NCBI GenBank assembly: GCA_013115145.1
Contig: JAAPAO010000227.1
Location: 1 to 49,942, forward strand
Direction of reading: 5' to 3'
DNA: 49,942 nucleotides
From: Perkinsus chesapeaki ATCC PRA-425
Taxonomy: Eukaryota; Protista; Perkinsozoa
Shown here: positions 11,373 to 41,240 of the stretch, piece after piece
How the letters are laid out: the number at the start of each line of letters is the position of its first letter
Position numbering within the stretch: the first letter of the stretch is position 1
Program-made: the position numbers and the translations under genes
The notes under the pieces: model-generated
What the model was told of the DNA's origin: nothing
Seen by the model: only the letters and a program-made list of their open reading frames with translations
Databases searched by the model: none

Positions 11373-13643
11373 ATGCTGAGTCGAATAACGTGCGGCCGAT
11401 CGTGGCTGCGGTCCACTGGTGCTATCTATAGTGCTATAAGAGCGGTCAATACCCGCCGATGCTTCGCTAGTATCCCTGAGACCATACAGGGGCTTCAAAG
11501 CGCACTGGAGGCTAAAACTGGCGATGTTACGGTAAGCGGGGTGATGCAGGTTATTACCCTAAACCGGAGGCATCCCTTCCTCTGTCATTGCTGGAAGACT
11601 GGCTCCGACATGTGTTGGTTCACTTACTGCATCTGCATTGTGCTTGAGTGCATCTTGCCCGTTTTATTCTCTTCTGTTCGGTGGGTGTAATAACCTTTTA
11701 AGAAACCGGGAATTCAGTATCGTACTTATCATCATTTTTAGTCCCTGTGGTTATTTCAGGTGGTATCATCCAGCCCTAACATGCTTAAGGTGCGCAGCAA
11801 AGGCCTTAGCCCCTCCATTGGCCAGTTAGTATCTTTATCTGAGGGCTCCAAGGGTGTTGTGGTACCATCTTCCAACCTATTGAAGCTCCCACTACCCGTT
11901 CAGGTACATTTTGATTCTTCAGTTGCCACAGTGCTACTCCTAAAGCAAGACATCCCAGTCGGAACCGGCTCTAGTAGGTCTTTATGAAGCCAACTTCTTG
12001 TGGAGCTGTTTCTATCAGAGGTTCAACTTGCCGATCTCGGTCGATTTAATGCAGTTAGACTTCCCTATGTGCCGATTATCGACCGTGTTCCAGTTTCAAG
12101 ACGGCTTCGTAAGTACCCTAACCTCGTACTCAATAATAAACGACATCCACTGAGGCCCCCATACTTCTATACTAGTCTACTGGGATCGTTATATGAACCA
12201 ATTTCGGACCTTACAGGCGACTACTAATTGATTATATACATATTACTATATTGTTGAACAGATGAGTTTGAGCGCCCCTACAGGTACTGGTCTAGGGCTT
12301 GTCGATGCTCTATCTCCTATCGCAGAGGGGCAGTCTATAGCAATAAGAGGGCCATCAACAGCTACTAGCATATACATGGGATCTGCTTTAAATAAGATAG
12401 TGTCCAATGCTATACGGCAAGGTACAAAGGGTGACACGGAAGGAGAAGTGTGTTAACATTATGCAGGTGTCTCTGTGGTGTACTGCAATCCACTTGGCTA
12501 TGCTCCACCGGCAATTGCTGACCTGTTATCTGAGGGTCTTGACCTGGTCTGTGGAGATCCATCAAGTCCATCTATCGGTTACTTAGCGTTGTTGAAGTCA
12601 CTGGAAGTAGCAAAGGACCGGAGAGCAGATAGTCGCACTATGCTTGTATTGGATAACGTATCAGAGTAACAATGGTTCGCTGTGATGATTCTGGGAACTG
12701 TAAGGTTCAGATACTCGGAACTAAACGGTCAACTGCGATCCGAGGCAGGCGTCCCTATGCCCCTTTCGACAGAACAGATAGTATCGGCGGCAATGCAGTA
12801 AGCTAGCGCCTGCCCTTCCCAAAGGCACACAGCTCGGCTAGGTACTCGTGCAACACTAGAGGGACCCTTTACCCGCTTACAACAGTCGTCTTCACCGATA
12901 AGTTCTCACGGGATGTTGAGATGCAGGCCGATACCGTAAAGATGTTACCTATAGAGTAATAGTAAGAGACCTGCCATTTGTCAGCTCCTACAGTATAACG
13001 TTGGTGCGGCGTCGTTCGATGCCAGTGGGCTATGTCATAACTCTTTGTTGTATTCGCTCCTACCTACTCTTGACGCCAAGTGCGTGAAGGATCTCCGGGA
13101 CATGCATGTAGTACACCCTCCCTTTTAAGCAGCATCCTCTGTTCCCACTAGTCTCAAATAACCATGCAGCGGTCGACCATAGCGGAGCAGCAAGCGTTTG
13201 GTATCCATGTTGATTACTGGGAAGAGGAGGATGTTCAACATTGGTCCAACGCTCTAGCTATTCTAGATGCAATACCACTATCTTTGCCTCCAGCCAAGAG
13301 AATACTGGTAGGATGTGTTATTTTGTGGATTCTACAACTCCTGCTTAGGTAATGCGTAGCGTTCTTGTCTACTACTTTGTCGGCAAGCGTAACCTTGAGG
13401 ACGCCAGCATATCTTCCTTCATTTCCGACTTGGCTGATTGCTTCGAGACCAACGAACCACGAGTGATCGATGCAATTAACGCGGTTCTAGCCGAGCCCGA
13501 TTGTAAAGGCAACCTCATCTTACATGGAGGGATTCATAATTTCAGGTTCGCGAGAACTGGTCGAGGATCTGTGCTATCGTGTTGATTGGACACTTGCGAG
13601 ATATCGGTATCATTTCGATTTGGCGACCCCCAAAGAAGTTTAA
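11373..13643 (+). CDS. Highly divergent F1-ATP synthase alpha-subunit-like protein with degenerate Walker A and a mitochondrial-type presequence
   Basis: Colinear matches to alpha: VVSSSPNMLKV...SEGSKGVVVHFDSSVATVLLLKQD (beta-barrel); APTGTGLGLVDALSPIAEGQSIAIRG (cf. [26 protein letters not shown]); LVLDNVSE (cf. LIIYDDLSK); RGTLYPLTTV (cf. GSLTALPVI); AEQQAFGIHVD (cf. AAFAQFGSDLD). The last intron (13509-13545) is GC-AG. Confidence 0.8.
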
Positions 13644-21414: not shown

Positions 21415-22302
21415 TTATCGAATCGGCTTTAATGATATATCCGATTCGATAAACTTGAAGGGGTAAGATACTTTGTAGTTCAAAACAGGAAGAATACTAA
21501 ACACTTCTGCTTGTCCAAGTAACTTCCACTCCCGCAAATCGTTCTTGACCGTCTTGAAACTCAACGAGAATGTCACACCGAACTTCACCCTGTATTCGAT
21601 GGTCTCCAAAGTACTCGAAATGTTAAAACCAAGATGGTAGGAGTTGTGGGCAAACACCTTGCTGGTCTGAGCTTTCACAGGTACAAGAAACGGTCCGTAC
21701 TTCATGACGCTGACCCCGAATATTAGCTGAGCTACCAATGGGACATCCCGAGGGGTACCTAACTCGTAAGAACTCGATGAGTCGTCGGGTTCGATATAGG
21801 TGGCCATGGCAATAGTTGCCTTCACAGTTTTGTTGCCAAAATATACTAACTGAGCTTCGCCGCCAGCCCTAGCATCGAGCGACTTCAGCTTTTTCTTATC
21901 ATCATAGACCGCATCGACACCGACAAGTGTGCTTTTGTTAGGGTTTCCACTGTCGAAGAACTCCATTGTAGCTTCAACGGTCGTTTTCTCGCTTTCGTTG
22001 AGCTTGCCATGAAAGCAGTAAGAGTACTGTTCGGGTCGTCCGTAGGATGTACAGTTTGGCGGGAATGCAAATGAACCATCGGATGGAACAGAGGCCTGTT
22101 GGATACCCTTCGGGAAAGAGGCAGCCTGTTTTTGATTGAATTCCTTGGACAAACCTTCGACCATCTTCATGAAGTTTATCATCTCGGATAACTCTTCGTC
22201 ATCGGGTAGGATTGAAGACATATCATACGGACGGATAGGATTCTGGACGATGGCAACCGAGCCCGTGAAGCAGAGAATGAAGAGGAGTAGGATTACAGAC
22301 AT
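21415..22302 (-). CDS. Intronless secreted orphan protein, about 295 aa, beta-strand-rich C-terminal half
   Basis: Uninterrupted ORF, signal-peptide-like MSVILLLFILCFTGSVA, one Cys pair (CTSY...YC). No family recognised. Confidence 0.75.
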   Translation of the reverse strand: MSVILLLFILCFTGSVAIVQNPIRPYDMSSILPDDEELSEMINFMKMVEGLSKEFNQKQAASFPKGIQQASVPSDGSFAFPPNCTSYGRPEQYSYCFHGKLNESEKTTVEATMEFFDSGNPNKSTLVGVDAVYDDKKKLKSLDARAGGEAQLVYFGNKTVKATIAMATYIEPDDSSSSYELGTPRDVPLVAQLIFGVSVMKYGPFLVPVKAQTSKVFAHNSYHLGFNISSTLETIEYRVKFGVTFSLSFKTVKNDLREWKLLGQAEVFSILPVLNYKVSYPFKFIESDISLKPIR

Positions 22303-22525
22303 TATCACAGCAGCAAAACTGGCAAATAAGGAGGATACTGAATGAATTGAAGATGATAAACCAAGACTCGGGCGGAATATTGCAAAACCGGAGGCCAGCC
22401 TAATATAATGCGACTCGAATGCGATCGAAGTTGTGAACAGTTCGCAAAGTTCCTTATCTTAGGGAGTATATCAAAAGCTTAGGCCGTGACCATGGTGTGA
22501 CTATTTCACACGCATGCTCATGTCA

Positions 22526-23164: not shown

Positions 23165-23807
23165 TCACACTCGGCTATTCGGCAGGGAGCCAGAAGCCCT
23201 GGCCGAGTTAACTCTCCATCCAGTAATGATAAAGATGATTGCAATGACAACCAGATAGATTCCCAGAACAATATATGCCCACGACGATGCACCACTTTGT
23301 GAACCACCTCCGATATACAACAGCCCAAGGTAGATGTACACAAGACTTCTACCATACAGGGTACCCAAGAAGGCGGCACGCTCAATAAACCAGCCAGTAA
23401 TGCCAGAACTGGGAAGAATCTCTACGAAACAGAGAATGATCCCAAATATCAGATAGAAGACGGTTAGGATATATGTTAGAGGATTTAGGACCTGAAACAG
23501 GTGGCGGTGCCAATGGAGGCAGATAATAACTAATATCTACATGAACAACTTACCGAGTTGGCAAAGTTGAAGCATCCCAGTATAGCAACCACGAGAATTC
23601 CGATGGCTGCCAGACTGCCTAGGATGCGAATATGAACTGGATCACCTTCGGTTACCTTCCCCCATATATTTTTAACCTGTGAAAAAAGTCTTCTTGAAAC
23701 TGGTCGAAGTACGCCGATCTTACTCGTGCTTTGAAGCCTGTCGGTTGAGGCCTCTCGCCAGGGGTAAAACTTTGAGCACCGATAGTGGATGACTGAGGGC
23801 CGGCCAT
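23165..23807 (-). CDS. COPI-associated (TVP15-like) multi-pass membrane protein, paralogue 1 (3 exons)
   Basis: MAGPQSS..|VKNIWGKV..FNFANS|VLNPLTYILTVFYLIFG..FLGTLYGRSLVYIYLG, carrying the family motif FLxxxxGRxxxYxxxG. Confidence 0.85.
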
Positions 23808-23991
23808 ACGCTACAGTAAGAAGCTGAAAACTCCGGTTCGAAACGAGAGGGACTATACAACTCAATAGGTGCCATGAATACAATACGAGAAATTATGAAA
23901 TTAACGCGTCTTAGTGGTGACGCTTACATCGGAAGCGTACAGCATCATCGAAGCGATATCAGAGTGCTGGTGGTTCAATTAAATAAAGCTA

Positions 23992-24797
23992 CTATACGTT
24001 GCTGGTTGACGGCGGTAGGGTAGCACCTCTAGTATCGATAAACCCGATTACAAAATTGGTTATGGCTAGAAGTAATAGAATAATACCAATGATAAGATAG
24101 CTCCATGATGTGACACCATCCTGAGCACCTCCTGTCACATAGAGGAGTCCTATGTATAGGTAGCACAGTCCTCGGCCAATGAGGGTACCGAGGAAGGGAG
24201 CCCAATGCAGGATAAGCTCAGATAGGGACCATTTAGGGGCAGCTTCTACAGCGAGAAGAACTAGACCAAATATGATATAAAATATTGATAGCATGTACGA
24301 CAATGGGCTCAATACCTGAAACAACGACGAGGTCGAAATCCAGGAGAAGCAACCTAAACTGATCTAAAGATTTGCACACCACACTGAACGTGAGCATCCT
24401 GTTAAGATGAAGGAATCCACTTACCGCATTGAAGACACTGAAGAATCCAAAGAAGCCTATGAGGACAACTAAGAATGCTCCAATGATTCCGGAAATCTTC
24501 AAGATAGGGTTAGAGTCACCTATAACATCACTCCACGCCGTACGTGCCTGAAACAAGAGGGACCTGGTGTGACGCCGAATACGAGGCTCCGGACACCATC
24601 AGACCTCAAGAGTCTTCGGAAATAGTACATTTCTAAACATGCCCATTTTCAGGTGGAAAACAGATATGTGAACTCAACTTCGATTTTTGAACAATCGGAG
24701 AGTTTTCCGTCCTACTGGTGCCACCGTTTCCTCCACCCCAGCTCACCTTATCCTTGAAAGAGGCCCCACCAGCTGCGTTACCGTTAGAATTCTCCAT
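23992..24797 (-). CDS. COPI-associated (TVP15-like) protein, paralogue 2 (3 exons)
   Basis: MENSNGNAAGGASFKDK|ARTAWSD..FSVFNA|VLSPLSY..FLGTLIGRGLCYLYIG. Confidence 0.85.
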
Positions 24798-25135
24798 ATG
24801 TAGATTCAACTTTAAAGAGGTTTGTACCACTTACTTTTGTCTCGACTGTGACATGCGTACCCAATAAGGGCACGCCATTGCAATCGATTGTATTTGGTTG
24901 TGTTTCCGTCCGTAGGGTATCGCAGAGTCTTCTAGCTTCGCACTACACCTTCGTTGTTGCTTTCTGGTGAATTACTATCGAGCTGCTCTGGAGCTTGCGT
25001 GGAGGGTAAAGCATGAAATTAGTGTTAGTCGGGACTGTGTACATGCGTGCAGTTGTGTGGGTTGCCGCCGTCTTCCTTTGAAAGCATTTATCTTGTCAGT
25101 ATCTGAGTTTAAAAGTTAAATCTTAATCTATAACA

Positions 25136-25691
25136 ATGGCCGCTGTTACTAGTACTCCCGGCATGAAACCCAATCTCACTTGGAAAGAGAAAGTAACACC
25201 ATGTTCATGTTCACGAATCTTCATCTCTTTTTCAGATCTCTCATGCATGGTCGGATACAACGAACGGCAGTAACGCTCTCATCCGTATCCTTGGTGCACT
25301 CGCTGCTATCGCGACGTTCGTCGCCGGTTTGCTGAGCATGTTTAATTTCTTCAACATGGTCACCAATCCTCTATCCTACATACTCGGTGTGTTCTTTATG
25401 ATATTCGGCCTTGTCCTCACCTTTATTGAGCTCTTCCCCGGTGCGAAGCTCTCCAAGGTCGTTTTCTCTCAAGCCAAGTTCCTTAGTCACCTTCTTGGAC
25501 GTGGGTCCTTCTATCTTTATCTGGGTCTCCTGTTCACCTGTGGTGGTGTCCAACATGGCTTCACCTCTATCGTAGGCTTTGTTGTTGGTATTTATCTCAT
25601 CGCAGTTGCTGTTATTTACTTCATTTGGGGCTTCACTCATCGTAAGGAAGTTTCTATGACTGAGCCTCTTAATGGCGCTACGAATGTATAA
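25136..25691 (+). CDS. COPI-associated (TVP15-like) protein, paralogue 3 (2 exons)
   Basis: MAAVTSTPGMKPNLTWKEK|ISHAWSD..NPLSYILGVF..FLSHLLGRGSFYLYLG. Confidence 0.87.
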
Positions 25692-26274
25692 GCTTCGTTA
25701 CTATATCTCCTTATTCCTTCCAGACACTCATCAGTATTGTCCCTATTTTGTACGAGAACAACAGGATGTAGCCGATGATGTTAGTTTACTGTTGTTAAAC
25801 AGTGGATGACTGGTCCTCAGTGATGAAAGGCCGAGGCAATAGCCAGTTTATTGAAAACGTTCTCTCGAGGGTTACCATATAAGGTTTTGTGTTTGTTAAA
25901 TACTTGTTCAAAAAAGAGGAGCGGTGTCGTGAGTTCATAGGTTTAGTTCGATAGAAGTGGATAGTTGATATTGTCTTGATATTCAATTTTAATCGACTTG
26001 CCCAACAAACGCGAACGCACTGTAGATGGCTCGCTGCTTCAATGGGAAAAAGAGGAAATGCGTATGTTGCATCTTACCAGCTTGGTCTTCCACGGTCGGT
26101 GTTGTGAACAAGGATCCATCGTGGTTTTGTGACAGGACATTGTGTCGTTGTGGAATAATATCGCACTTGAACTAGCGTATCCCCGGCTTGCTTAGTCGCT
26201 GGTATGAACAATGTTCACTAATAACTGTTTGAAATGCTACATTTAAGCTATTTTAATTTTTACCATTTTTAATC

Positions 26275-26854
26275 ATGACCGCTGTTACAGAGACTCCTGA
26301 AGACGATACCAAACTTAACCTCACCTTCAAAGAAAAGGTAAAGCTGCCATGCCATCAGTTATTATCCCAACTTTTCTGTGCAGGTGTGTAGCTCCTTCGT
26401 GGATCCAACTCCTCACAGCAATACCTTCACCCGTGTGGTGGGCATTGTTGCTGCCATAACAGCTTTCGTTGCAGCTATATTCGCTTTCGTATTCTCGATT
26501 GTATCAGCTTCTCACGTTCCTCTTTACCGTACTCCTATCAACTACTGTGTGATCGTTTTCCTTATCCTTACAAGTGCCCTTATGCTCGTCCTTGAGATAT
26601 TCCCCGGTTCTGGAGCATCTAAAAACATCATCGAAGACGCCAACTTCCTCGGAGATTTTTTCGGCCGGGGATGGCTCTACCTCTCACTCGGTCTCTTCTA
26701 TCTTTGCAGTGGACACGTCATTTGTATTATCGTTGGTATATACCTTCTCGTGGTTGGTGTGATTTTTGTTACTTTGGGAGCTATTCAACACGAGCAAGCT
26801 AGACATGCAGATGAAGACGCCGTTCACAGGAAGTCGGCGGTTATCGATGTATAG
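26275..26854 (+). CDS. COPI-associated (TVP15-like) protein, paralogue 4 (2 exons)
   Basis: MTAVTETPEDDTKLNLTFKEK|VCSSFVD..FLGDFFGRGWLYLSLG. Confidence 0.83.
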
Positions 26855-27230: not shown

Positions 27231-30200
27231 ATGTCGTCGCAAGTTTCACCGATACGGGATACTAGCGAAACGAACGAGCAACAACAGACTGCTTCCAAGG
27301 AGAAGCAGAAGGCTCCGTTGGTTCCGTTATTGTCATTATTTCGATTCACCTCATTTACTGAGAAACTCCTTCTAGGTAACTGCGACCAGCGGTCTCGGGA
27401 CGCACTTGCTGTCGTAGGTCTGGCGATTTTGTGCTCTATCGGCCATGGCATCGCAATGCCACTTTTTGCGTTTGTATTCGGTGACATCGTGGGTGAGTGG
27501 TCTGTCTATAATGATGAGCTTATTAGCTTCGTTCAGACACTGTAGGAGATCCAAACGATCCGGACATCATGGATGTTATTGTTAAGCAAAGTCTATGGAT
27601 GGTAAGCCGTGCTGCGCTGTTGCGAATCAATGAACCCAAATCTTCAAAGTCATCACAGACCTCCGCCCACAAGGCTCTCGCGGTTGAGGCTCTGGTGTCT
27701 CTTAGTCAAGTCCTTTCAACACGTCCGTAGCTTAAGTCCAACCGTTTTGCATATGGCGGCCATACTGTGGCCGCGTGCGCATATCTGAACGTTGCCCTCC
27801 TTCTCGCTCCTGTTGAATGAGCGTTCAGGGATATATTGGTATCGGTACCACGGTAGTGGGAGGCATCTGGCATGGTATCCTGACGTATCTTGCTGCTAGC
27901 CAAGCTAACAAGATGAGAGTAGCATATCTTGAGGCCGGTAGGTTAGACTTATACAACTCATAATCATAATGATCATCGTGCCGCTATTAGTCCTATCGTC
28001 TGACATTCGATACTTTGATGAGATATCACCTGCTGAGTTGCCAACAAGAATGACGGAAGATGTTGCGAAGGTGGGAAAGTGGCTTTATATTGGTAAATAG
28101 ACACTTAATCAATGTGTTCCTCAATTACAGTACGTAGGGTCGATGCGACCCTCGGTGCTGCTGAAACTCATGTCAACTCACAGTCAATGAAATTTGCTCT
28201 ATCACAATGGGTCGGTTCTGTCCAATGAAAAGATTCAAATTAGGCCCAGTTCCAAGTATCGCGCCCCATTTGTTGGGGAAGCAGCAGCAGCTCCTCCTCC
28301 TTGAAGAGCTCCTCAGGATTGGTATGTACGCTCCGCGTCTAGGTACAAGATGCTATAGGGTTCAAGATTGGGATGTGCCTTATGAACCTATCAATGTTTG
28401 TATTTGGCTTCGGCTTCGGTTTCTACCGGGGATGGAAGGTAAGCTGTGAAGCATCTTACATGTGCCGTTGCAATATATTACGGTAGATAACATTGGTCAT
28501 GTTGGCAGCCATGCCGGTTATCATAGCAACATCCGCATTGCTCGGCATTGTTATGGCGAGGGGAGTAGTGGAGACTCAGTCCTGGTATGCTAGAGCCGGT
28601 GCCGTTGCCGAAGAGGTAGGGAGCCCCCTAACCCTCATAGATCGACTGCTGTTATGAGCAGGTGTTGAGCTCTATACGAACTGTGACGATGTTTGGTACC
28701 CAGCAGCGGGAAAATGACCGCTACCGAGACTGCCTTACAGAGGCGAAGAAAGGTGAATCGGCTGAAGGCCGCCTGACTTATTGGTGCTCTTCAGGTGGCA
28801 TCAAAGCTGGTATGCAGAATGGCTTCGGAGTTGGCCTTGCATTCTGCTCCATGTACTGCACTTACGCACTTACGTTCTGGTAAGGCAAGGCTAGTGCCCA
28901 CCGGTACTACCGCATTCATAGGTATGGAGGGACTCTTGTAGAAGACGGTGAGACCAACGACTACACTGGAAATCCTTATAACGGTGGTGACGTTCTTGCT
29001 GTGTTCTTCTCTGTTATTATGGGTAAGACTACTAGTACTAGTCCTGTTCATCCCCACTCTGTTACTGTTGAACACTTCGTGCCTCCTTCAGCCACCTTTG
29101 GTCTAGGCCAAGCCATGCCACCAATTCAAACCTTTCAAGCCGGGAGGGCATCCGCCTATGCTATACATAAGCTCATTGATGATAATACCGCAAAGATTGA
29201 GACACGAATGAAACCTTCTGGAGGTTGGCTCGATTACAGATGCTGCGCTTCAGTTGACTATGGTTGTGATGACAGGTTCTTCGGCATCAGTTACCCATGA
29301 TGAACAACTGAAGCTGGAGTCACTTGCCCTGGATAGTGTTACCTTCAGCTACCCTACTCGACCAGAGGTTACTGTTCTTAAGGAAGTCTCACTGATTATC
29401 AAGCCGGGTACGAAGGTCGCTATAGTGGGAGAGAGCGGCTCTGGCAAGAGTAAGATAGCATCAGTTGCATTGTGGTGATGTGAGTGTCGAGGTACGGTGA
29501 TATCTTTATTGGAGAGGTTCTATGATCCAACCTCGGGAAGAGTACTGGTGAATGGCGAAGATGTGAAGGACTTGCCCGGTGGGGCACTGGCTCTGAGGAA
29601 GCTGTTTGGGTGACTACTGAGGTGTAGAGTAGAGGAGAGGTGATCCGGTGCAGATACGTTGGCCAGGAGCCTGTGCTCTTTGCTGCGAGTGTAAGAGACA
29701 ATCTCACGTATGGTCTGGATTACACTCCCACGGATGAAGAGATAAAGTCAGCATGCAAGAGAGCTAATGTAGGGTTTATGATATCCTTGAATATAATATT
29801 GTTATTATTGTTGTTGTTTTAAAAGGTACATTCATTTATATCATCCTTACCAGATGGTTATAATACATATTGTGGAAGTTCTAGTGGTGGTGGTAGTCAA
29901 ATATCTGGTGGACAAAAACAACGTGTAGCAATAGCAAGAGCATTATTAAGAAATCCACAAGTAATTATTATAATATAGTATTATTGATAATTATCATTAT
30001 TTGAGATATTATTGCTGGATGAGGCAACATCTGCTTTGGATAATGAAAGTGAAAAGCTAGTACAAGGCACCCTAGATGAGTAGTAGCTGCCGCATTCTCG
30101 GACACTGCCACCGTGGCTAAGGCTTCATGATCAGATTACAGGACTCCACCAACCTCACTACAATCTCCATAGCCCATCGGCTCTCCACGGTTAGGAACTC

Positions 30201-33200
30201 AGACGTTATATTTGTTATGCATGAAGGTAGACTGGTAGAGCAAGGAAAGCACGAGGAGCTTATCAGTAAGGAGGACCGATAAGCCCAGTTGTAGTTGATC
30301 GGCTCCGTAGACCGTCCAGCTGGGGTCTACCGTAGCTTAGTGTCATCTCAAGAAGCGGCGGCTTCGATGTCCAGCCCAACCACTGAGGGCAGGTAAGGTG
30401 AGAGGACCTTGCTAAGGCAGCAGTGTCGTGTTAAGGGAAACTGAGAAGGCTCCAAGCACTCCTAGTGAAAGCGAAGTTGACGCCGAGATCACCGTAGCTG
30501 TCGAGCCTTACGAGAGTGAGGAGGCTAAAGAAAAGAAACGCATTGCAGCCGTTGCCAAGGCGTACAAGGTGGGCCTTCTCTTGGCCGCTATGCCTTAGTA
30601 CACCTAGTGTAGGTCCCATGGAGGAGACTGTTCGCCATCAACAAACCTGAGTGTGGTTACTTCATACCAGCTATGATTGGATCTGCTATGTTTGGCACTG
30701 TTATGCCCATGGAAGGCTTCTTATTGGCTAGGGCCATGAAAGCCTTCTATGACCCCGACCCGACTAAGCTTATGGAGGGTGTCCAATGGGCTGCTATAGG
30801 GTACCTCTTATCCGAGGCCTTCCCTCTCATCAAGTGCCTCAGGTATACATTGGTCGCTTTTGGAGCCCTTTTTGGTGCAGCACTGCAATTCTCTTACTTC
30901 GCTGTTATCGGGGAGAACCTTACAATGCGAATTCGTCAGCTTATCTTTGCCAAGTTCTTGAAGCAGGTAAAGCTCCCGAAGCTTAAACGGCAGCACCATC
31001 GAGGTCGTTCATATGTTTCAGGATATCGCTTATTTCGATGATCCCGATCATTCCACAGGCAAGCTCACGTCATCTCTGTCATCCTATGCACTTAAGATGA
31101 ACAGCATTACGGGGATACAACTAGGTGGGAGTGTCCTGCAGTCAGGGGATCAACTTCACGGTGTCATCGTCAGGTGTCTTCTGCCAGTTTGCTGCATCTA
31201 TCATATCGGGGTTGATTATAGCTTTCAGTGCTGACGTTAAACTATCACTTGTGATGATGGCATGCTTACCAGCTATGGCTGGAGCTGGTAGGTTTATCTC
31301 TTCGGGAATGGCAGCAGCTCTGTATATAAAGTGTACGGGCTGGAACGGTTATATTCTACTATATATTCAAACCTTCACTACATTGCTGGCCACCATGGGC
31401 CTACCTGCATAGGCTCACCTTTTCACGACTATGATTCGAGGAGCTCCAAGGGAGAGGAATATTGCCAGTCTGTCGCGGCTAGCTGCTGTCTGACAGTGGA
31501 TCCCTACTGTTTTCAGGAGCCATACAGATGGCGGTGATGATGGGAGTTGACAACGCCTCGGAGAAGGGTGGTGCGAGGCAAGCCGCACAATTGGCATCGG
31601 AAGCTATCCAGAACATGAAGACTGTTAGAGCGTTGATCGCTGAGCAGGCGACGCGCGACACGTAAACATCGCCGTAGTGGCGTCTACGCAAAGACTATTT
31701 TGGATAGATACCAGGAGTTATTGAGCAAATCATTTGGAGCTCAGAAAAAGGCATCCTCGATCTCCGGCTTCTGGTTCGGTGCCTCTAATGGCTTGATGTT
31801 TGGTGGTATGGCTCTGGGCTTCTGGTAAGGCTATGATCACCTGTCGCATACAAAACAGATGATGCATGAAGTCACTATAAAAAGTTCACTGACTTAAATT
31901 TTGATCCAGCCCCCCCACTGAAATAAGTTGGTTGAGCTCGGTCTTATTTGTGTCAGCGGGACATGATCCTTAGCATTTGATTCCTCATGTATCAGGTATG
32001 GTGGTAAACTAATTATTGAAGAAGGTTTGCCCTTTGATAAGATGATACAGTCTCTTATGGGAGTCTTCCTTTGTGCCATGGCTGCTGGACAGGTGAACCA
32101 GCCGCGCCGTGGGACCATTTTACAACCTCTGAGTCGATTTCAGTCGATGGCCTTCCTTGGGGACGTAGATGCTGCCAAGGCAGCGGCTCACGATGTTTTT
32201 GAGCTGTTGGACTCCGAGGTCTCTATCACATCAGCACCCTCTACGAAGTCGAACAATGTCAGTGAAGGTGTTTTTACGCTCTGGGACTTCTTCATTCAGG
32301 GCTTTAACGAAGGCGTGCGGATCAAATTCGACGGCGTCTCATTCAGCTACCCGCATCGTAAAGGAGTTAAGGTATCATCGTCGCTGTACAGTGAAACATA
32401 GCGTATCGCTGCCCAAAAGGTTTTGGATGGTCTGACGTTCGAGGTCGAGCCGGGGCAGACCGTAGCCCTTGTTGGACCGAGTGGCGGAGGAAAATCAACA
32501 GTCTTTGCCCTACTGCAGAGATTCTATGATCCCAACGAAGGCCAGGTCCGGTTTCATGCGAGCGGTTCCTCCCTTATCTCTCAGTCTAGGTGTACGTGGG
32601 GTCGTCTGGCACTAAGCTGACCGAGACGGAGCTTGACAAATGGAGAGGGACGATAGGCTTTGTTTCCCAAGAACCCGTCCTATTTGACTTGTCTCTTGAA
32701 GAGAATGTTCGCTACGGGTGGGTTGGACTACCTAAGCTTTTCCGCCGTCATTAGCTCGTTTATCCGCTCACTTTGTACCGCTTACTGCTCAGCGCCCCTC
32801 CAGTGAGCACTGACGAGCTTCATGAAGTATGTAGTCGTGCTGGAATGGATGACTTTGCGGGGACCAAGGTTGCTTGGAATGCCCAGCTGGGCCCTAGAGG
32901 AGGACTACTCTCAGGGGGCCAGAAGCAAAGGGTGGCTATTGCTCGAGCACTAATAAGACACCCTAAGTAACAGCGAGGCTCGTACTCATGCCCATCACGA
33001 ATGCTTCCTCTCCCTTCAGATTGGTGATGCTAGATGAAGCTACCTCGGCCTTGGACTCCGCATCGGAGGCGATTGTCCAGAAAGCGATCGACAATTTCGT
33101 GACTGCTCGGTCAGATGCAAACGGTGAACATGTTATGGCTGCACACTTGGCATGGGTTCCTGCCAGATAAGCCCACCACACTTATAATCGCCCATCGGCT

Positions 33201-33330
33201 ATCGACGGTCCAGAATGCTGATAAGATACTCGTGCTCTCTGGTGGGAAGCTTGTTGAAAGTGGCACTCACAATGAGCTGATGTCGAAGCAAAGCGTGTAT
33301 CATGGTCTATATACGAAGGGAACATTGTGA
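27231..33330 (+). CDS. ABCB1: Full-length ABCB/MDR (P-glycoprotein-like) transporter A, TMD-NBD-TMD-NBD, many short introns
   Basis: [75 protein letters not shown]. The junctions checked stay in frame. Confidence 0.95.
29735..30050 (+). repeat. AT-rich homogenised NBD1 tract, copy A
   Basis: The 135-nt exon 29826-29960 is identical to 35952-36086 and 43438-43572, and the flanking introns are homologous. Confidence 0.9.
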
Positions 33331-33784
33331 AAATGGGCAATTGGGAAGTTGACTAAGTGCCAGAGTTTTTTAACGTGTCATGTATTCCACGTACAGTGTA
33401 TGTTACTGCAGCTTTGACTTTGTGGCGATCCGAGTTGATCAATTTTATTGAACTGTCAACGTGGGCTGCTGCCTTGTAATCGATATGCGTTTCGGGTATA
33501 AATCACATGATAACTGTATGCTCTTCCTCTCGAAAGAGGCGCAAGGGGTCCTATCCTCCTAGTGGTGCAGGTTCCTAAAATAGCGCCGCTATGAGGCCAT
33601 ACGACCGTTTGGATTGGGAAACCGATGAAACGGTCGCATTTCTCTACCAGCTAGCGTGGCGGGATTGAAGCACCCCTGGTTGCGTCAGCACAGTGTGTAC
33701 GCACAGCGCGGGTCGATGAGCCGGCACGGAATCTGTCGGATGCCAGATTCATACTCTACCTCCTTAGGCCATTGCATTATCCTA

Positions 33785-36700
33785 ATGAACGGTGAATCAT
33801 CAGCTACAATATCTACTGTGGGAACTGACGACGTTGTCGCAGAGACCTCATCTCGACCAGCTACCTCTCCTACTAACAAGAAGAAGAAGATTGTTTCTTA
33901 CTTCAAGCTTTTTCGGTTTGCAACTGGTCCGCAATTAGGTGCAGTCAGTAAGCACAACGCGTTCGGGTGTATTACTCTGTAGTTTGTCTCCCTTAGTTGT
34001 TGCGGTGTTGGCCGCGGCGCTGCACGGTTTGGCGATGCCCATGTTCGCTTACATCTTCGGTGATCTCGTTGGTGGGTTATAAATGAATAACCCTCCTGAG
34101 TCTTTATGTTCATTCAGACGTCCTCGGTAACCCTCAAGGTACCGAATTCATGGATGAGATTTCCAAGAGATGTCTCTATCTCGTAAGTTTCGTGACCTCT
34201 CCACCGTGATTTCTATCGTTTAGGTTTATGTTGGCCTTGGGGCGTTGGTTATGGCTGGCATTTGGCACGGTCTCCTAACGTTTACAGCCCAGAGACAAGC
34301 AACTACTATGCGCAGGGCTTATTTTGAAGCCGGTAGCTCATCGTCAAGTTAATTTGGTCATTGTACATATGTCTATCAGTTCTCTCCCATGACGTTGCTT
34401 GGTTCGATACGATATCTCCGGCCGAGCTGCCTACTAGAATGACGGAGGACGTTGCTAAAGTATCATGGAAGCTGCCAATCTCGTGGATCGTTGATGCCCT
34501 TGTTCAGGTCCAGAACGCCATAGGGTTCAAATTAGGTGTCTTCACTATGAATTTTTCAATGTTCATTTTCGGCTATGTATTAGGATTTATAAGAGGCTGG
34601 AAGGTCAGCTTGGAATTAGGGGAAGTTTGGTAGCTAAATCCATTAGGTTTGTCTCGTAGCCATTGCAGCCATGCCAGTAGTAATCGCCGCATCGGCGATA
34701 CTCGGTCACGCTATGGCGCAGTCTGCTAATGAATCGCAAACGTGGTATGCTAGGGCTGGCGCAGTTGCCGAAGAGGTGATCTGGAGAAGTTAAATAGTGC
34801 TTATGTTGGTGACAGGTCCTTAGCTCAATTCGTACAGTAACTATGATGGGTACGCAAAAACGTGAAGTTGAAAGATATGGCAAATCCTTGGAGGAAGCTC
34901 GTAAAGGTAACCTTTTATTTGGAAAGATATTCTATATTATGTGAGTAGGTGGAACCAGATTGGGTTGCCAAGCTGGACTTGGTCTTGGTCTTACTTTCGG
35001 TGCCATTTACGGTTCCTATGCCCTCACTTTTTGGTAAGCTAATAACACGGCGTGACCTGAGCATGCACCTTCCTCCTCAGGTATGGTGGCACATTGGTGC
35101 GTGATGGTGTTTTCAATGACTTTACCGATAAGCCCTACAATGGTGGTGATGTTCTCACCATCTTCTTCTCCTTGATCATGGGTCAGTCCTTTGCTGCTCT
35201 TTATCAGCATTACCCGTCTTTCTCCTAGGCACATTCGGACTGGGTCAAGCCCTCGCGCCTATGCAAGCTTTTCATATCGGCCGCTCGTCAGCAACAGATA
35301 TCCAGGCACTCATCGACGATAAGAGCAGCGTGGTGGAGCCTCCTATGCCCCCGAGGAGCTCGGATGGTGATTGGCCCTTCTATAGCCCATCTGCATTCGT
35401 CCTTTGCAGGCTCGCTCGTGATGCCTTACTCGATCCCAAAGATGCAGACCATGACTCTGAAAAATGTGTGCTTCACTTATCCCTCCCGACCGGACGTCCA
35501 AGTTCTCAAGAATGTCTCACTGCAAATCGAAATTGGCAAGAAAGTTGCCTTTGTTGGAGAGAGTGGATCTGGGAAAAGTGAGATGTGACGATGTCTACTT
35601 ATCCCTATTAGTCTTTCAGGCACTATCGTCGGGTTGCTAGAGAGGTTTTATGACCCTACAACCGGCACAGTGCTTTTAAACGGTGAGGATATTAGAGAGT
35701 TAGATGGCAGTCCACAGTGTATCCGTTCCATATTTGGGTGAGGTTGTTCATTGGTGGTCGAGAGAGCATAGACATTACTATTAGGTACGTTGGACAGGAA
35801 CCTATCCTTTTTGCAGCCTCCATTAAGGAAAATCTGTCTTATGGTCTGCCGTACACACCCACTGATGAAGAGATAAAGTCAGCATGCAAGAGAGCTAATG
35901 TAGGGTTTTGTGATATCCTTAAATATAATATTGTTATTATTGTTTTATAAGGTACATTCATTTATATCATCCTTACCAGATGGTTATAATACATATTGTG
36001 GAAGTTCTAGTGGTGGTGGTAGTCAAATATCTGGTGGACAAAAACAACGTGTAGCAATAGCAAGAGCATTATTAAGAAATCCACAAGTAATTATTATAAT
36101 ATACTATTATTAATAATTATTATTATTAAAGATATTATTACTGGATGAGGCAACATCTGCTCTCGATAATGAGAGTGAACTTATGGTACAGGAGACTATT
36201 GACAGGTAGATTTTATTCCGCTCCCCGCGCGATAAGTATCGGTTCCTCCCTTATCTTCCAGCCTCCAGCGTTCATCTCAATTGACAACCATCTCAATCGC
36301 ACATCGCCTTTCCACTATCCGCAACTCTGATGTGATCTTTGTCATGCAATCCGGATGCCTGATGGAGCAGGGCTCTCATGATGAGCTTATCGGTACGAAC
36401 GTGCTTGCTGTGGAGGAGGAGGCCTTGATGCTACATTTGTTTGATCAGCGAATCCTAAGGGTGTGTACAGCACACTGGTAGCTGCTCAGCATGCTGCTGC
36501 CACTAAAGGAAATAACAGGAGTGCTCGCCCTAGTCTCGTTCGTCAAGAGTAAGTGGGCACAGGTTCGATTCTCGGTGAAAACATTATTTTGTTCAGTTCC
36601 AATGCCAGCTCAAGCGCAGCGAGCCAATGTAGATGGTCTTTATTGATTAACCTAGGGAGCTAAGTTATTTCAGCCAATGGTGAGACAGCTATGGTCGTTG

Positions 36701-39259
36701 ACACCCGTACGGAGAAGGAGGTTGAGAGGGAACGTATAGAGAAGATCGCCAAGTCCTACAAGGTGGGGCCTGAAACGTCGGAAGACTGTTGTGTTCCTTG
36801 TCCCCCCCCCTTTTTGCCATTGGGAATTACCATTGGTATAATCAGGTCCCTTGGAGACGCTTACTGGCTCTATCCAAGCCAGAGTTTGGCTTCTATGTGC
36901 CAGCACTTCTGGGTGCTGTCATCTTTGGTTGTGTTATGCCGTTTGAAGGGTTCCTTCTCTCACGCTCGATGAGAGCATTTTACAAGACGGACCCAGATGA
37001 GATGATGGATGGTGTGACTCTGGCTAGTATTGGGTAATCATAGCTCAACCAATAGCCATTACGTCTTCCTGTCAGATATGTCATCCTCGGCGTCGCCTGC
37101 CTGGCGAGTGCATTCGTTCAAATGGGTGGGTTTGCCTATATCGGGGAGCACCTCACCAAGCGCGTCCGAAGTCTCTGTTTCACTAAGTTCCTCGAACAAG
37201 TGAGTTCACATTTTCAAAGGATCCTCCCCATGACTCCGCAGGATATGGCTTTCTTTGATGATCCCAAGCATTCGCCTGGTCGCTTAACAGCAGCGCTTGG
37301 CACATACGCTCTGAAGATGAATGCCATTAGTGGCGTCCAATTGGGTAAAAATTGCATCTTTATACTCAAGTGAAAATGATTTTAGCTTTAATGCTCTTCC
37401 TCTGCAGGTGCATACGTTCAACTTACAGCATCTCTCATTGCCGGACTCACCATTGCTTTCTTTGGGACATGGAAACTAACTCTGGTGATGATCGCAGTTC
37501 TTCCTTTGATGGCTGCAGCAGGTAGCTTTAGCATAGTTTTTTTCATCGCACGTGGCAGATTGGTGTAATTTAGGTGGCATTCAAATGGCGGTATTGCTCG
37601 GCATGGACAAGAACAAGAGTGCTGATTCCCTAGCGGCCAATCAGGTTGCGTCGGATGCGGTTCAAAACATTCGAACTATTCGTGCACTGGTCTCGGAGCA
37701 ATGGACACGCAATCTGTACGGAGGAGGTTTCTACGCTCTACTAACGTTGCTTGTTCAGGTTTCAAGATCTCCTCAAGCGTGCTGTTCCACAACAGGCACG
37801 GACGTCTAGCTGGGCTGCGTTATGGTATGGTATCTCGCAGGGCATTTTGTTCTTCAGTGTTGCTCTGGGATTCTGGTAAGTCCGTATCCACCCGCACAGT
37901 TCCACTACCGGTCTTCGCAAATCTCTGTTGATAAAGGTACGGTTCAAAATTGGTGCAAGATGAAGGTCTGACATTTGATAAAATGATACAATCTCTGATG
38001 GGTGTATTTCTTGCTGGTCTCGCAGCTGGTCAAGCTCTGGCCTTCGTTGGGGATATCAGCGAAGCGAAGGCAGCTGCCCACGATGTTTTCGAGCTGCTTG
38101 ACAGTGAGAGTTCCATTAACCCATCGAGTGAGAGTGGTAGAAGATACAGCGTCTGGGGACCACAAGTGAGCTGTCATCCCTTTTGTAGAGTTCATTACGT
38201 CAACCTCGATTAGGGCACATCTGCGCCTGCGGCGGTCAACATTAAGTTTAAGGATGTGGAGTTCTCGTATCCTCATCGTCCTGGTGCCAAGGTGGGGTTC
38301 AAGAGTCAGGAGTGGCTAGCGGTACAGCTCTTGGTGCATAGATTCTTTGCGGTTTAAGTTTTGAGATCGAGGCCGGCAAGACTGTGGCCTTAGTCGGTCC
38401 GAGCGGCGGAGGGAAGTCCACTGTGTTTGCTCTGCTGCAGAGGTTTTATGACCCAACTAGTGGAGAAGTAACATCTCCTTTCTTGGCTTTCTTGGCGTTA
38501 TGCGCATGCGTTCTTCCTCAGATACTTGTAGAGCCGGCTCAAGCTCGATTGGATGATATGAATGTTGCCTGGTGGAGAGAACAAATAGGTTTCGTTTCCC
38601 AAGAACCTGTACTGTTCGACCTCACCCTCGAGGAGAATGTCAGATATGGGTAACTGTCTGTGATTCTCCTATCATTAACATTCCTACTGCCTTATCAGTG
38701 CTCCTCCTATTGAACGTCCTGAGATGCTTTCTATTTGCGCTCGAGCTGGTATGAATGACTTTGCTGGCAGTAAAGTCGCATGGGATGTTGGTCTTGGTCC
38801 ACGTGGTGGGTTGTTGTCTGGAGGCCAAAAACAAAGAGTGGCCATTGCTCGAGCACTTATGCGACATCCAAGGTGAAATCTCATGGTACGCCGAATAAAC
38901 GCACCACATTTTCGAATCAGATTGCTTATGCTTGATGAGGCAACATCCGCTCTAGATTCGACATCAGAAGCCGTTGTCCAAAAAGCTATCGATGAGCTTA
39001 CCACTAAGAGAAGCTCTTCAACTGATGGTAGGTCTCGTTCTGAAATTTCGAGGTACACTATCTGGCGACGGTATTATTGTCAGGTGTGGCTGGAGTGAAG
39101 CCGACAACAATCGTCATAGCTCATCGTCTATCAACAGTCCATAACGCTGATTTAATCTTAGTAATTGCTAAAGGCCGTCTAGTTGAACAAGGAACACACA
39201 CTGAGTTGATGGAGAAGGAAGGAGTTTATTATGATTTACACCAGAAGGGCAGTCTGTGA
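33785..39259 (+). CDS. ABCB1: Full-length ABCB/MDR transporter B
   Basis: Same motif series as transporter A, with both Walker A and both signature motifs intact. The junctions checked are in frame. Confidence 0.95.
35865..36200 (+). repeat. AT-rich homogenised NBD1 tract, copy B
   Basis: Exon 35952-36086 is identical across A, B and C. Intron 36087-36131 is identical to 43573-43617. Confidence 0.9.
38550..38874 (+). repeat. NBD2 tract near-identical to 45943-46267
   Basis: 325 nt at a constant offset of 7393 with one mismatch seen, including an identical intron. The ORF track gives identical 60-aa translations at 38572 and 45965. Confidence 0.9.
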
Positions 39260-39730
39260 TCATTCTCCCTCTTTGTTGCAAATAAACAAAAGTTGTATAA
39301 TCGCTATGAGCTACTCTAAAGCATTTGTGACTACTTTTTTCATTATTGTGTCATATCATGTGTGACGAAAAGCAGCCTGTTGAGTTCACTCATGGCCGGT
39401 GTATAAGGTGAGTTACCTTAGGTAGCTACACTTTCATTAAAAGGAAGAGGCATCACCTCATCTGGAATGCGTGACCAGCAATTCCGTAACATTTCTGACA
39501 AACACAAAGCGCCTTGCCGTTATATGTGAAGCTATCTACTCGGTCACTGCTAACTAGGTAGCAAGGAATCACCCCTGGCGCCGACCCCGATATCTGTTAA
39601 CGATTTTCGATACACTAAGGCCATGAAGTAGATGGCGTGATGATATTATGTGACAAAGATGCTGCTGAACCCTTCCTAATAAAAAAAGGAATTATCACAT
39701 CAGGCACAGCTAGACGAAGTCCTTAAAGTT

Positions 39731-40129
39731 TCAGTGAGCCTTCTCATATATCCGTGGTTTCTTGTCTAAATAAACGACAGTGAGTTGTGTCATCTTCTTA
39801 TTCACCTTGACTTTGTTAAACGTTTTGTTACCAATTTTCTTAGGGTACTTCTTCATTAACGGCTCAAGGTCACCCTCGTCGAAGATGAACTTCATAGTGC
39901 CGTTTTTGTACTGGTAATCGGTGAAGTAGATGTTCTTATTAGTGTCCGCCAATGCGGCATAGCCAAGGGCAACATCTATATCAATCTCAATGATGACAAA
40001 GTCAGTTTCACTTGGACTTTTGAGCGGTAAGAATGTGCCCGATGGTTGCTTTTGACCCAAAGCCATATAGAGCAGCAGCATCATAACCAACATCAGTGAG
40101 CTCGCGCTCAGAGGGGCGTGAGTTGACAT
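39731..40129 (-). CDS. Intronless small secreted orphan (132 aa) with a P-x-G-T-[FY] motif after the signal peptide
   Basis: Hydrophobic LMLVMMLLLYMALG followed by QKQPSGTF, in an uninterrupted ORF. Confidence 0.75.
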   Translation of the reverse strand: MSTHAPLSASSLMLVMMLLLYMALGQKQPSGTFLPLKSPSETDFVIIEIDIDVALGYAALADTNKNIYFTDYQYKNGTMKFIFDEGDLEPLMKKYPKKIGNKTFNKVKVNKKMTQLTVVYLDKKPRIYEKAH

Positions 40130-41240
40130 GTTATAACACAGCGCGAGACCAACCTTATTTTCAAATTAGCCAGTGACACGCGCATTTTCACAGTGGGGCT
40201 GCAACCTGATACGTCACTAGACAGGGCATCACATCAGAGGCACATACAGGAACATCAGAAGCAATGTTCTCAGAAGGAATGCATTCCATGTATCATATCG
40301 ATATAGTAATATATTTACTGAGAAAGTTACCATTAAATCTACACATGAGGAACACTTTGTGTGCCTCGAGGAACCCAATCGTATGGCGCTCGATGAGCCT
40401 CTCCATCATATGGCGCTATTGTACTCCCAGTCTACTACGCTGAATATCATGATCCATTGGCCGCTGACTGCCACAGTCGCGAATTCCAGCTCCTGAGTGA
40501 AGTAGAATACTCTCAAAAACTGCTTTTTTAGAAGGGCGGGCTCTTCCTCTGCTGTCGTGTAGAAGCAGGGAACACGATTAATGCATGTGCGTGGAGGGGA
40601 CCTGCTCCACTCCCATAAGGACCGGGCAGCGGGCTGGCAATAACAATTGGCCAATTTAATGCAGGATTCAACGGCAGGGGTGAACCCTAGTGGTGTCCAA
40701 CAGTCCTGTGATTGCTCCAGCACATCCTTGGCACTCCAGGAAATGTTAAGTTATGTCGTTCGCAATTCTGAAGGAAGCCTACGATGGATCTTCAACTATC
40801 ATAACTTCCCTACCATGCCCTTTACAAGATCGACTGCAGCGCCTTGTTGTTAAGCTTTATAACAAGACACTCTCTCCCTGATTTCAACATGCCTTGGAGC
40901 GACGAGACGAAGAAAGCCAGACCGCGCTAGCCATGAGGCTGAGCGTCACGCCGAGACGCCTCCGGACCCCAGAGATGTCTCACCATGCCGTCTCTGAGTT
41001 TACCCACACGCTGGCTCTGCATTTGCCGTATCTCCGGTTTTGATCGCATAATACAGCACACTTAAGGCTTGTTATATTACCCTTGTCATTCTCTTTAAAT
41101 TTTTCACCTATCAAGTAGTATTCCGATGATTGGTAACCTGTGCTCCAATAGACGTATCCGGTAGAGCAGTTGGGCAAGAATCTGAGCTTGAAGCGCGCTT
41201 AACTCACCCTTCTCCAAAATGTTCAGTTAATTTTTGTTAT

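Follow-up and report, generated by a model that had tools for sequence, protein, structure and literature searches.

Positions 11373-13643 of the forward strand of contig JAAPAO010000227.1 of Perkinsus chesapeaki ATCC PRA-425, a relative of oyster parasites (assembly GCA_013115145.1; the window analyzed here is the entire contig, positions 1-49,942), encode a protein that is descended from the alpha subunit of F1-ATPase, yet lies outside the functional alpha family. The nucleotide-binding motif of alpha is gone from this protein, and the gene is maintained in three species of Perkinsus. Our favored reading, to which we assign a probability of roughly 0.45, is that the protein is imported into the mitochondrial matrix, where it would be a non-catalytic mimic of alpha that binds F1 components as an assembly or regulatory factor. 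A full-length paralog of F1-alpha with a broken P-loop and a mitochondrial-type presequence had been proposed at this position from the DNA letters and their translations (hereafter, the original prediction). Few proteins are known to be as strongly conserved as F1-alpha.

The gene, which is nuclear, consists of 12 exons, obtained by joining stop-free segments in changing frames, with a total of 1470 nucleotides (nt), 489 codons and zero internal stops. Its start codon is the ATG at 11373 and its stop codon the TAA at 13641-13643, and the coordinates of the original prediction are therefore the exact span of the gene. The description of the exons as open and colinear also held, since the reading frame is uninterrupted through all 12. 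Every one of the 11 introns has the form GTA..YAG, and nine have lengths of 41-49 nt. The orthologs carry similarly tiny introns at the same positions as those within 11532-13545, although their lengths are not conserved, and one intron of P. marinus has expanded to 605 nt.

An exhaustive search with the 66-residue piece encoded by exon 6 identified the public counterpart of this gene as KAF4666745.1 (P0001), "hypothetical protein FOL47_003923", whose UniRef entry carries an automatic ATP-synthase function line. KAF4666745.1 is residue-for-residue identical to our 12-exon model with the exception of one acceptor site. The public model uses the acceptor at 13169/13170 (exon start 13170), which drops the six residues SQITMQ, and our model uses the acceptor at 13151/13152 (exon start 13152), which keeps them; their counterparts are AKITMK in P. 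olseni and ARTTMK in P. marinus. We consider 13152 to be the better acceptor for exon 10 because the orthologs retain the six residues and exon 10 is 156 nt long in both. For the exon carrying the P-loop, a start at MSLSAP (12262-12283; acceptor 12261/12262) was rejected, as this segment is intronic and the true acceptor is 12283/12284. The resulting junction joins IIDRVPVSRRLR to TGLGLVDALSPIAEGQ and gives a gapless alignment with the alpha motif IIPRxSVxEPxQTGxKxVDxxxPIGRGQ. The annotation of the P. marinus ortholog, Pmar_PMAR000023 (GG675180.1), omits exon 4, folding L003:1163-1350 into a 188-nt intron. This exon is intact in the P. marinus DNA (90 nt, L003:1212-1301, VQFDNLGRFDAMRLPFVPIVDRIPVARRFR), where it lies between two 49-nt GT..AG introns. 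Two public gene models, KAF4666745.1 of P. chesapeaki and Pmar_PMAR000023 of P. marinus, are thereby corrected.

Sequence searches consistently returned alpha subunits, at scores far from those of functional ones. Pfam gave no family for the protein even at E<=10, either with single exons or with the spliced protein, and the three alpha families PF00006, PF02874 and PF00306 were included in that search. The best NCBIfam scores (27-29 bits) missed the threshold of the functional alpha family, for which the curated cut-offs are 484-750 bits (TIGR00962, NF009884). Nevertheless, the only NCBIfam families that reached E<1e-3 were those of alpha (5e-7 to 5e-4), with the flagellar FliI weaker at 0.02 to 0.06 and no beta family at all. 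Similarly, the matches of phmmer and profile searches of the PDB were almost all alpha chains, some 50 of them, the mitochondrial ones ranking first (best E 0.007-0.008); the Toxoplasma alpha chain matched at an E of about 1. Single exons reached an E of only about 0.3 against the PDB, and it took the spliced protein for the similarity to become significant. Exon 5 gave the best match to alpha in both the PDB and NCBIfam searches.

Comparisons with bacterial subunits pointed in the same direction. A hidden Markov model (HMM) of gamma-proteobacterial alphas scored 6.5-11.7 bits for the three Perkinsus proteins, whereas none of 300 shuffles exceeded 2.2 bits, and a bacterial beta HMM scored 0.8-1.7 bits for the same three, the shuffle maxima of the alpha and beta HMMs being 2-3 bits. 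The hhalign comparisons with narrow gamma-proteobacterial profiles (P 0.006 for alpha, 0.038 for beta) are weak and only directionally consistent. The language-model features of the ESM Atlas gave a score of 0.94 with 214 of 256 features shared, and V-type B clusters were among the feature neighbors. The nearest of these feature clusters are diatom and chlorophyte proteins labeled "F0F1 ATP synthase subunit alpha" (638-728 amino acids) in which the central domain PF00006 is the only Pfam match, and which may be other divergent alpha-like proteins.

The predicted structure supports the same descent. AlphaFold produced a model with a predicted local distance difference test (pLDDT) score of 40 when given the three orthologs alone, and of 50 when 18 bacterial alphas were added, the latter model being circular as to fold. 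Since our own AlphaFold models were of low confidence or circular, we judged the fold on the matches of the alpha-free model in Foldseek and on a model in the ESM Atlas. The top 50 Foldseek matches of the alpha-free model were all alpha chains (E 2e-12 to 5e-11, about 500 aligned columns), and across the Foldseek searches alpha chains matched at E 2e-12 to 3e-14, again over about 500 columns. The ESM Atlas model is a single-sequence prediction, free of any multiple sequence alignment, of the P. olseni ortholog (P0003), with a predicted template modeling (TM) score of 0.73. Its structural neighbors are all alpha subunits, with TM scores of 0.64-0.70 over 404-421 residues. As the alignment spans positions 22-489, approximately, the three alpha domains are present in the expected order, namely an N-terminal beta-barrel, a Rossmann-type nucleotide-binding domain and a helical C-terminal domain. 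Strands were predicted at residues 51-101 in the AlphaFold models, at low confidence. Together with the NCBIfam results, these neighbors bear out the assignment of the protein to the alpha type, as opposed to the beta, V/A or flagellar types.

The Walker motifs of alpha are altered in all three species. At the position of the P-loop, GPSTA(T/N)S stands against GDRQTGKT of alpha, so that the Walker A Lys and Thr are gone, and in Walker B the YDDLSK of alpha has become L-DNV(S/A)E, with the first Asp kept and the second replaced by Asn. Both substitutions (GPSTATS and DNVSE in P. chesapeaki, Table 1) had been read correctly from the DNA at the outset. Restoration of a GKT motif by different splicing had been named as an outcome that would count against a broken P-loop. 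Because GK[ST] is absent from the protein and from every forward frame of the exons and introns in the three species, alternative splicing is unable to restore the P-loop. The arginine finger, bovine alpha-R373 or E. coli alpha-R376, is the residue that alpha supplies to the catalytic site of beta, and E. coli alpha-R376 mutants, which have lost it, have an F1 that is nearly inactive. The corresponding region is shortened in the Perkinsus protein and its alignment is uncertain; residues 314-344 hold no Arg or Lys in either plausible alignment, and, within the limits of this alignment, the finger appears to have been lost. We infer from these changes that the protein would be unable to bind nucleotide canonically or to complete a catalytic site.

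A considerable part of alpha has been kept. The core of the fold (TG..VD..PI..GQ, LTxxP and DV) is recognizable, as is the N-terminal helix specific to alpha (SIPETxQGLQSAL, aligned with EISELIKQRI). The crown lacks one hairpin but is otherwise present, and the helical C-terminal domain, whose tail is invariant, carries lineage-specific insertions. With key residues lost and purifying selection acting on the remainder (see below), the protein is, judged by its sequence, a pseudoenzyme.

The N-terminus looks like a mitochondrial presequence. In P. chesapeaki it reads MLSRITCGRSWLRSTGAIYSAIRAVNTRRCFAS (11373-11471), with six Arg and with its first acidic residue no earlier than position 36. The Arg-rich, acid-free character and the RRxFAS-like ending for which a presequence had originally been suggested recur in the other two species. 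In all three, the first 33-34 residues include 6-7 Arg but nothing acidic, abound in Ser, Thr, Ala and Leu, and end in RRxF-A(S/T), a pattern (R-2/R-3) known from cleavage by the matrix processing peptidase and Icp55. No other part of the protein varies as much from species to species. A location in the mitochondrial matrix is therefore suggested.

Among 5.8 billion clusters, word-indexed protein searches and searches with a profile of the three species found only two matches apart from P. chesapeaki, those of P. olseni (P0003; 490 amino acids, 81% identity) and P. marinus (Pmar_PMAR000023). These searches found no relatives outside Perkinsus, although their word filter limits their reach and absence elsewhere is not proven; a scan of metagenomes likewise found none, and is limited by the word filter and by introns to the same effect. 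The family thus appears to be restricted to Perkinsus so far. The 12 exons are of matching length in the three species, with the exceptions of one additional codon in exon 1 (P. olseni and P. marinus) and one in exon 6 (P. marinus), whereas the introns are anything from 41 to 605 nt long. The protein is highly and evenly conserved along its full length, C-terminal domain and lineage-specific insertions included, and the presequence is the least constrained segment. The proportion of nonsynonymous differences (pN) among the three species is 0.09-0.13 versus 0.71-0.81 for synonymous ones (pS). Synonymous sites are saturated, and the ratio of the corresponding rates (dN/dS) is about 0.05 in the sole species pair for which dS is defined. 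As pN is far below a saturated pS, selection on this gene is strongly purifying. Gene order is kept on both sides, and the neighbors are no more conserved than the gene itself. The exon structure, selection and synteny in three species therefore rule out a decaying pseudogene, in agreement with the expectation that this is a maintained gene.

We then considered how such a protein might act. Because nucleotide binding and completion of the catalytic site seem to be lost, its role is probably exerted by binding partner proteins. We propose that it would be imported into the matrix via a cleavable presequence, where, with no canonical nucleotide binding and no support of catalysis, it would act purely via the protein-protein contacts inherited from alpha. 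These contacts, with beta, gamma or OSCP, would be made elsewhere than in the mature enzyme, such that the protein holds, caps or regulates unassembled F1 parts and is not a working member of the alpha3beta3 ring. A more specific form of this proposal, which we regard as possible but tentative, is that the nucleotide-blind mimic takes the place of alpha next to beta, or the site that binds OSCP, in idle F1 or in intermediates of assembly, serving as a placeholder, chaperone or brake. A place outside the mature complex is favored based on the fact that an alpha lacking the finger would cripple the ring and that the protein is unreported with the mature enzyme.

The status of the protein in relation to a canonical alpha depends on work in P. 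marinus. The P. marinus complexome study reports homologs of 27 Toxoplasma ATP synthase subunits, all of them except subunit c detected in a complex whose size is about 1.9 MDa (PMC13623125). Given the E of about 1 noted above, Toxoplasma alpha would hardly recover the present protein in a standard homology search, and for the same reason the alpha of that complexome is almost certainly canonical, a conclusion drawn from P. marinus proteomics only. By extension from that study (PMC13623125), we infer that the P. chesapeaki gene is a paralog. That the protein is instead the sole alpha subunit of Perkinsus, extremely diverged and with no second copy, is very improbable: the subunit inventory and the lack of a convincing match to Toxoplasma alpha both speak against it, and an F1 whose alpha was without an arginine finger would be nearly inactive. 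Still less credible is a decaying pseudogene or annotation artifact. The lack of a Pfam match would fit it, but the 1470-nt frame is open through 11 introns, exon lengths are constant in three species in which introns vary, and pN is far below pS.

Two other explanations are real alternatives. The protein could be a structural pseudoenzyme recruited by a mitochondrial complex that has no relation to F1 (the mitoribosome, the nucleoid or a respiratory complex, for example), the alpha fold serving as a scaffold and the old F1 contacts being irrelevant. The high and even conservation over the full length, with the C-terminal domain and lineage-specific insertions included, is in keeping with this, as is the recruitment of many unrelated proteins into the mitochondrial complexes of myzozoans, of which the ApiAP2 proteins in the mitoribosome are an example (PMC13623125). 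We nonetheless consider it unlikely, as the alpha-specific N-terminal helix and the crown, which an unrelated scaffold would not need, have been retained. Proteins reported in the main text of the complexome study as consistently co-migrating with the 1.9 MDa ATP synthase are two only, of 10 and 19 kDa (PMC13623125), and the absence of the present protein from this list suits a role in another complex. It also bears on the possibility that the protein is a genuine ATP synthase subunit, either an alternative (e.g., stage-specific) alpha isoform in at least one position of the F1 ring or an extra peripheral subunit. Since only two small co-migrators were reported, a 50-kDa alpha-like protein is, indirectly, unlikely to be a stable stoichiometric subunit. 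The loss of the P-loop and of the arginine-finger region, moreover, would disable the neighboring catalytic site. The full-length alpha architecture with its N-terminal helix speaks for such a subunit, as the helix of canonical alpha is the part that binds OSCP/delta. Also in its favor, the Perkinsus ATP synthase is enlarged and several Toxoplasma subunits are without a detected homolog in it (PMC13623125). On balance, we consider a genuine subunit to be rather improbable.

Several points count against our preferred reading of a matrix-imported alpha-mimic acting on F1 components. The term paralog presupposes a canonical alpha elsewhere in the genome; the presumed loss of the arginine finger is read from a stretch that contains a deletion and aligns with uncertainty; and the mitochondrial location is predicted from features of the N-terminus. 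Furthermore, the assembly or regulatory role is argued from the features kept and lost, and a role in an unrelated complex fits these data equally well.

The closest known system is mitochondrial F1-alpha itself (ATP5F1A/Atp1; TIGR00962, NF009884; PF02874, PF00006 and PF00306), which was the best match in every sequence and structure search and which shares with the Perkinsus protein the order of three domains, the N-terminal helix, a presequence-like N-terminus and the core motif. The differences are the missing Walker A Lys and Thr, the change of DD to DN, the lack of an Arg at the finger position (where alignment is uncertain), and a mature protein that is shorter by about 50 residues, having deletions in the barrel and ahead of the C-terminal domain, and insertions within the latter. 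Subunit B of the V- and A-ATPases, which also belongs to the F1/V1 superfamily, is comparable in that it has no canonical GxxxxGK[ST] loop yet has been retained for a non-catalytic role. However, B is a highly conserved stoichiometric ring subunit in all eukaryotes, while the Perkinsus protein is nearer to F-type alpha, is genus-restricted so far and has no known ring. The F1-like alpha paralogs of Mycoplasma (MMOB1660, a gliding-motor subunit, and MSC_0619, a type-3 alpha) are similar in being diverged alphas repurposed outside ATP synthesis, and their families gave weak NCBIfam matches (E 0.002 to 0.15). Unlike the Perkinsus protein, which has no known beta-like partner and whose nucleotide motifs are gone, these bacterial proteins are encoded beside a beta-like partner and form an active ATPase.

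Two further comparisons are functional in nature. Atp11 and Atp12 (ATPAF1/ATPAF2) bind unassembled beta or alpha at surfaces that are later buried in the ring, and they would be hypothetical functional analogs of the Perkinsus protein only, as there is no sequence or fold relationship. The trypanosomatid p18, a pentatricopeptide repeat (PPR)-type protein bound to F1 alpha and a proven stoichiometric subunit, shows that a protist lineage can equip the F1 head with a protein of its own, but it is not an alpha paralog. The trypanosomatid F1 structures 6f5d and 8ap6 were among our PDB matches via their alpha chains. Our searches of full-text literature found no description of the present protein or of any dead mitochondrial alpha paralog, and the protein is not named in the main text of the P. 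marinus complexome study (PMC13623125). The coordinates of the exons and motifs are listed in Table 1.

Table 1. Exons and motif remnants of the alpha-derived gene of P. chesapeaki (positions in the window).
Feature	Position	Strand	Codons	Content
Exon 1	11373-11531	+	1-53	Presequence-like N-terminus (11373-11471), then start of alpha-type N-terminal helix (SIPETIQGLQSALEAK)
Exon 2	11760-11861	+	54-87	First strands of beta-barrel (crown) domain; 102 nt in all three species
Exon 3	11904-11973	+	88-111 (last split)	Remainder of barrel; about 16 canonical barrel residues missing
Exon 4	12019-12108	+	111-141	Linker and IIDRVPVSRRLR segment entering nucleotide-binding fold
Exon 5	12284-12421	+	141-187	TGLGLVDALSPIAEGQ motif and degenerate P-loop
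Walker A remnant GPSTATS	12349-12369	+		Replaces GDRQTGKT; no Lys, no GK[ST]
Exon 6	12467-12665	+	187-253	Central strands and helices of nucleotide-binding fold; ends LVLDNVSE; 100% match to P0001 residues 188-253
Walker B remnant DNVSE	12652-12665 plus 12711	+		Split across exons 6 and 7
Exon 7	12711-12797	+	253-282	87 nt in all three species
Exon 8	12842-12935	+	282-313	LYPLTTVVFT, counterpart of alpha SLTALPIIET
Exon 9	12985-13107	+	314-354	Region of alpha arginine finger (GIRPAIN); no Arg or Lys before K345; alignment uncertain
Exon 10	13152-13307	+	355-406	Helical C-terminal domain begins; 156 nt in P. olseni and P. marinus
Exon 11	13349-13502	+	407-458	C-terminal helices
Exon 12	13546-13643	+	458-489 and TAA	Conserved tail ...YRYHF(D/E)LATPKEV

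In addition to KAF4666745.1, a search with 12469-12666 returned a protein of 548 amino acids (P0002) with about seven repeats of ICGxPGSPYIGH, which resembles the exon 6 segment VCGDPSSPSIGY (E 8e-8, 33% identity), the resemblance to a repeat being probably fortuitous. Elsewhere in the window, an array of paralogous small membrane-protein genes occupies 23168-26851 on both strands. The sole piece of it that was scanned (25197-25688) matched Pfam COPI_assoc, and downstream of the P. marinus ortholog the array has a syntenic counterpart in two COPI_assoc genes. A long open frame at 21418-22458 on the reverse strand matched Pfam DUF6740 (E 2e-10). Three ABC-transporter paralogs lie within 27400-45200, and the short stretches they have in common (for example 29823-29963, 35949-36089 and 43435-43575) are equally similar, at about 96% in protein, to a single P. 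marinus gene.

As far as our literature searches reach, the Perkinsus protein represents a previously undescribed pseudoenzyme branch of the F1/V1 superfamily. Its role is directly testable with published data, as the P. marinus complexome provides migration profiles for >4,000 proteins that were searched against a proteome containing Pmar_PMAR000023 (PMC13623125). An alpha-like protein that has been kept by selection minus its nucleotide-binding motif would be a natural experiment on which surfaces of alpha matter apart from nucleotide chemistry. Its existence would add to the picture of unusual and enlarged respiratory machinery in the myzozoans, a group that includes the apicomplexan parasites. 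If our proposal of an alpha-mimic is true, the protein would be a pseudoenzyme regulator of ATP synthase that evolved from one of the enzyme's own subunits, with no counterpart in yeast, animals or apicomplexans.

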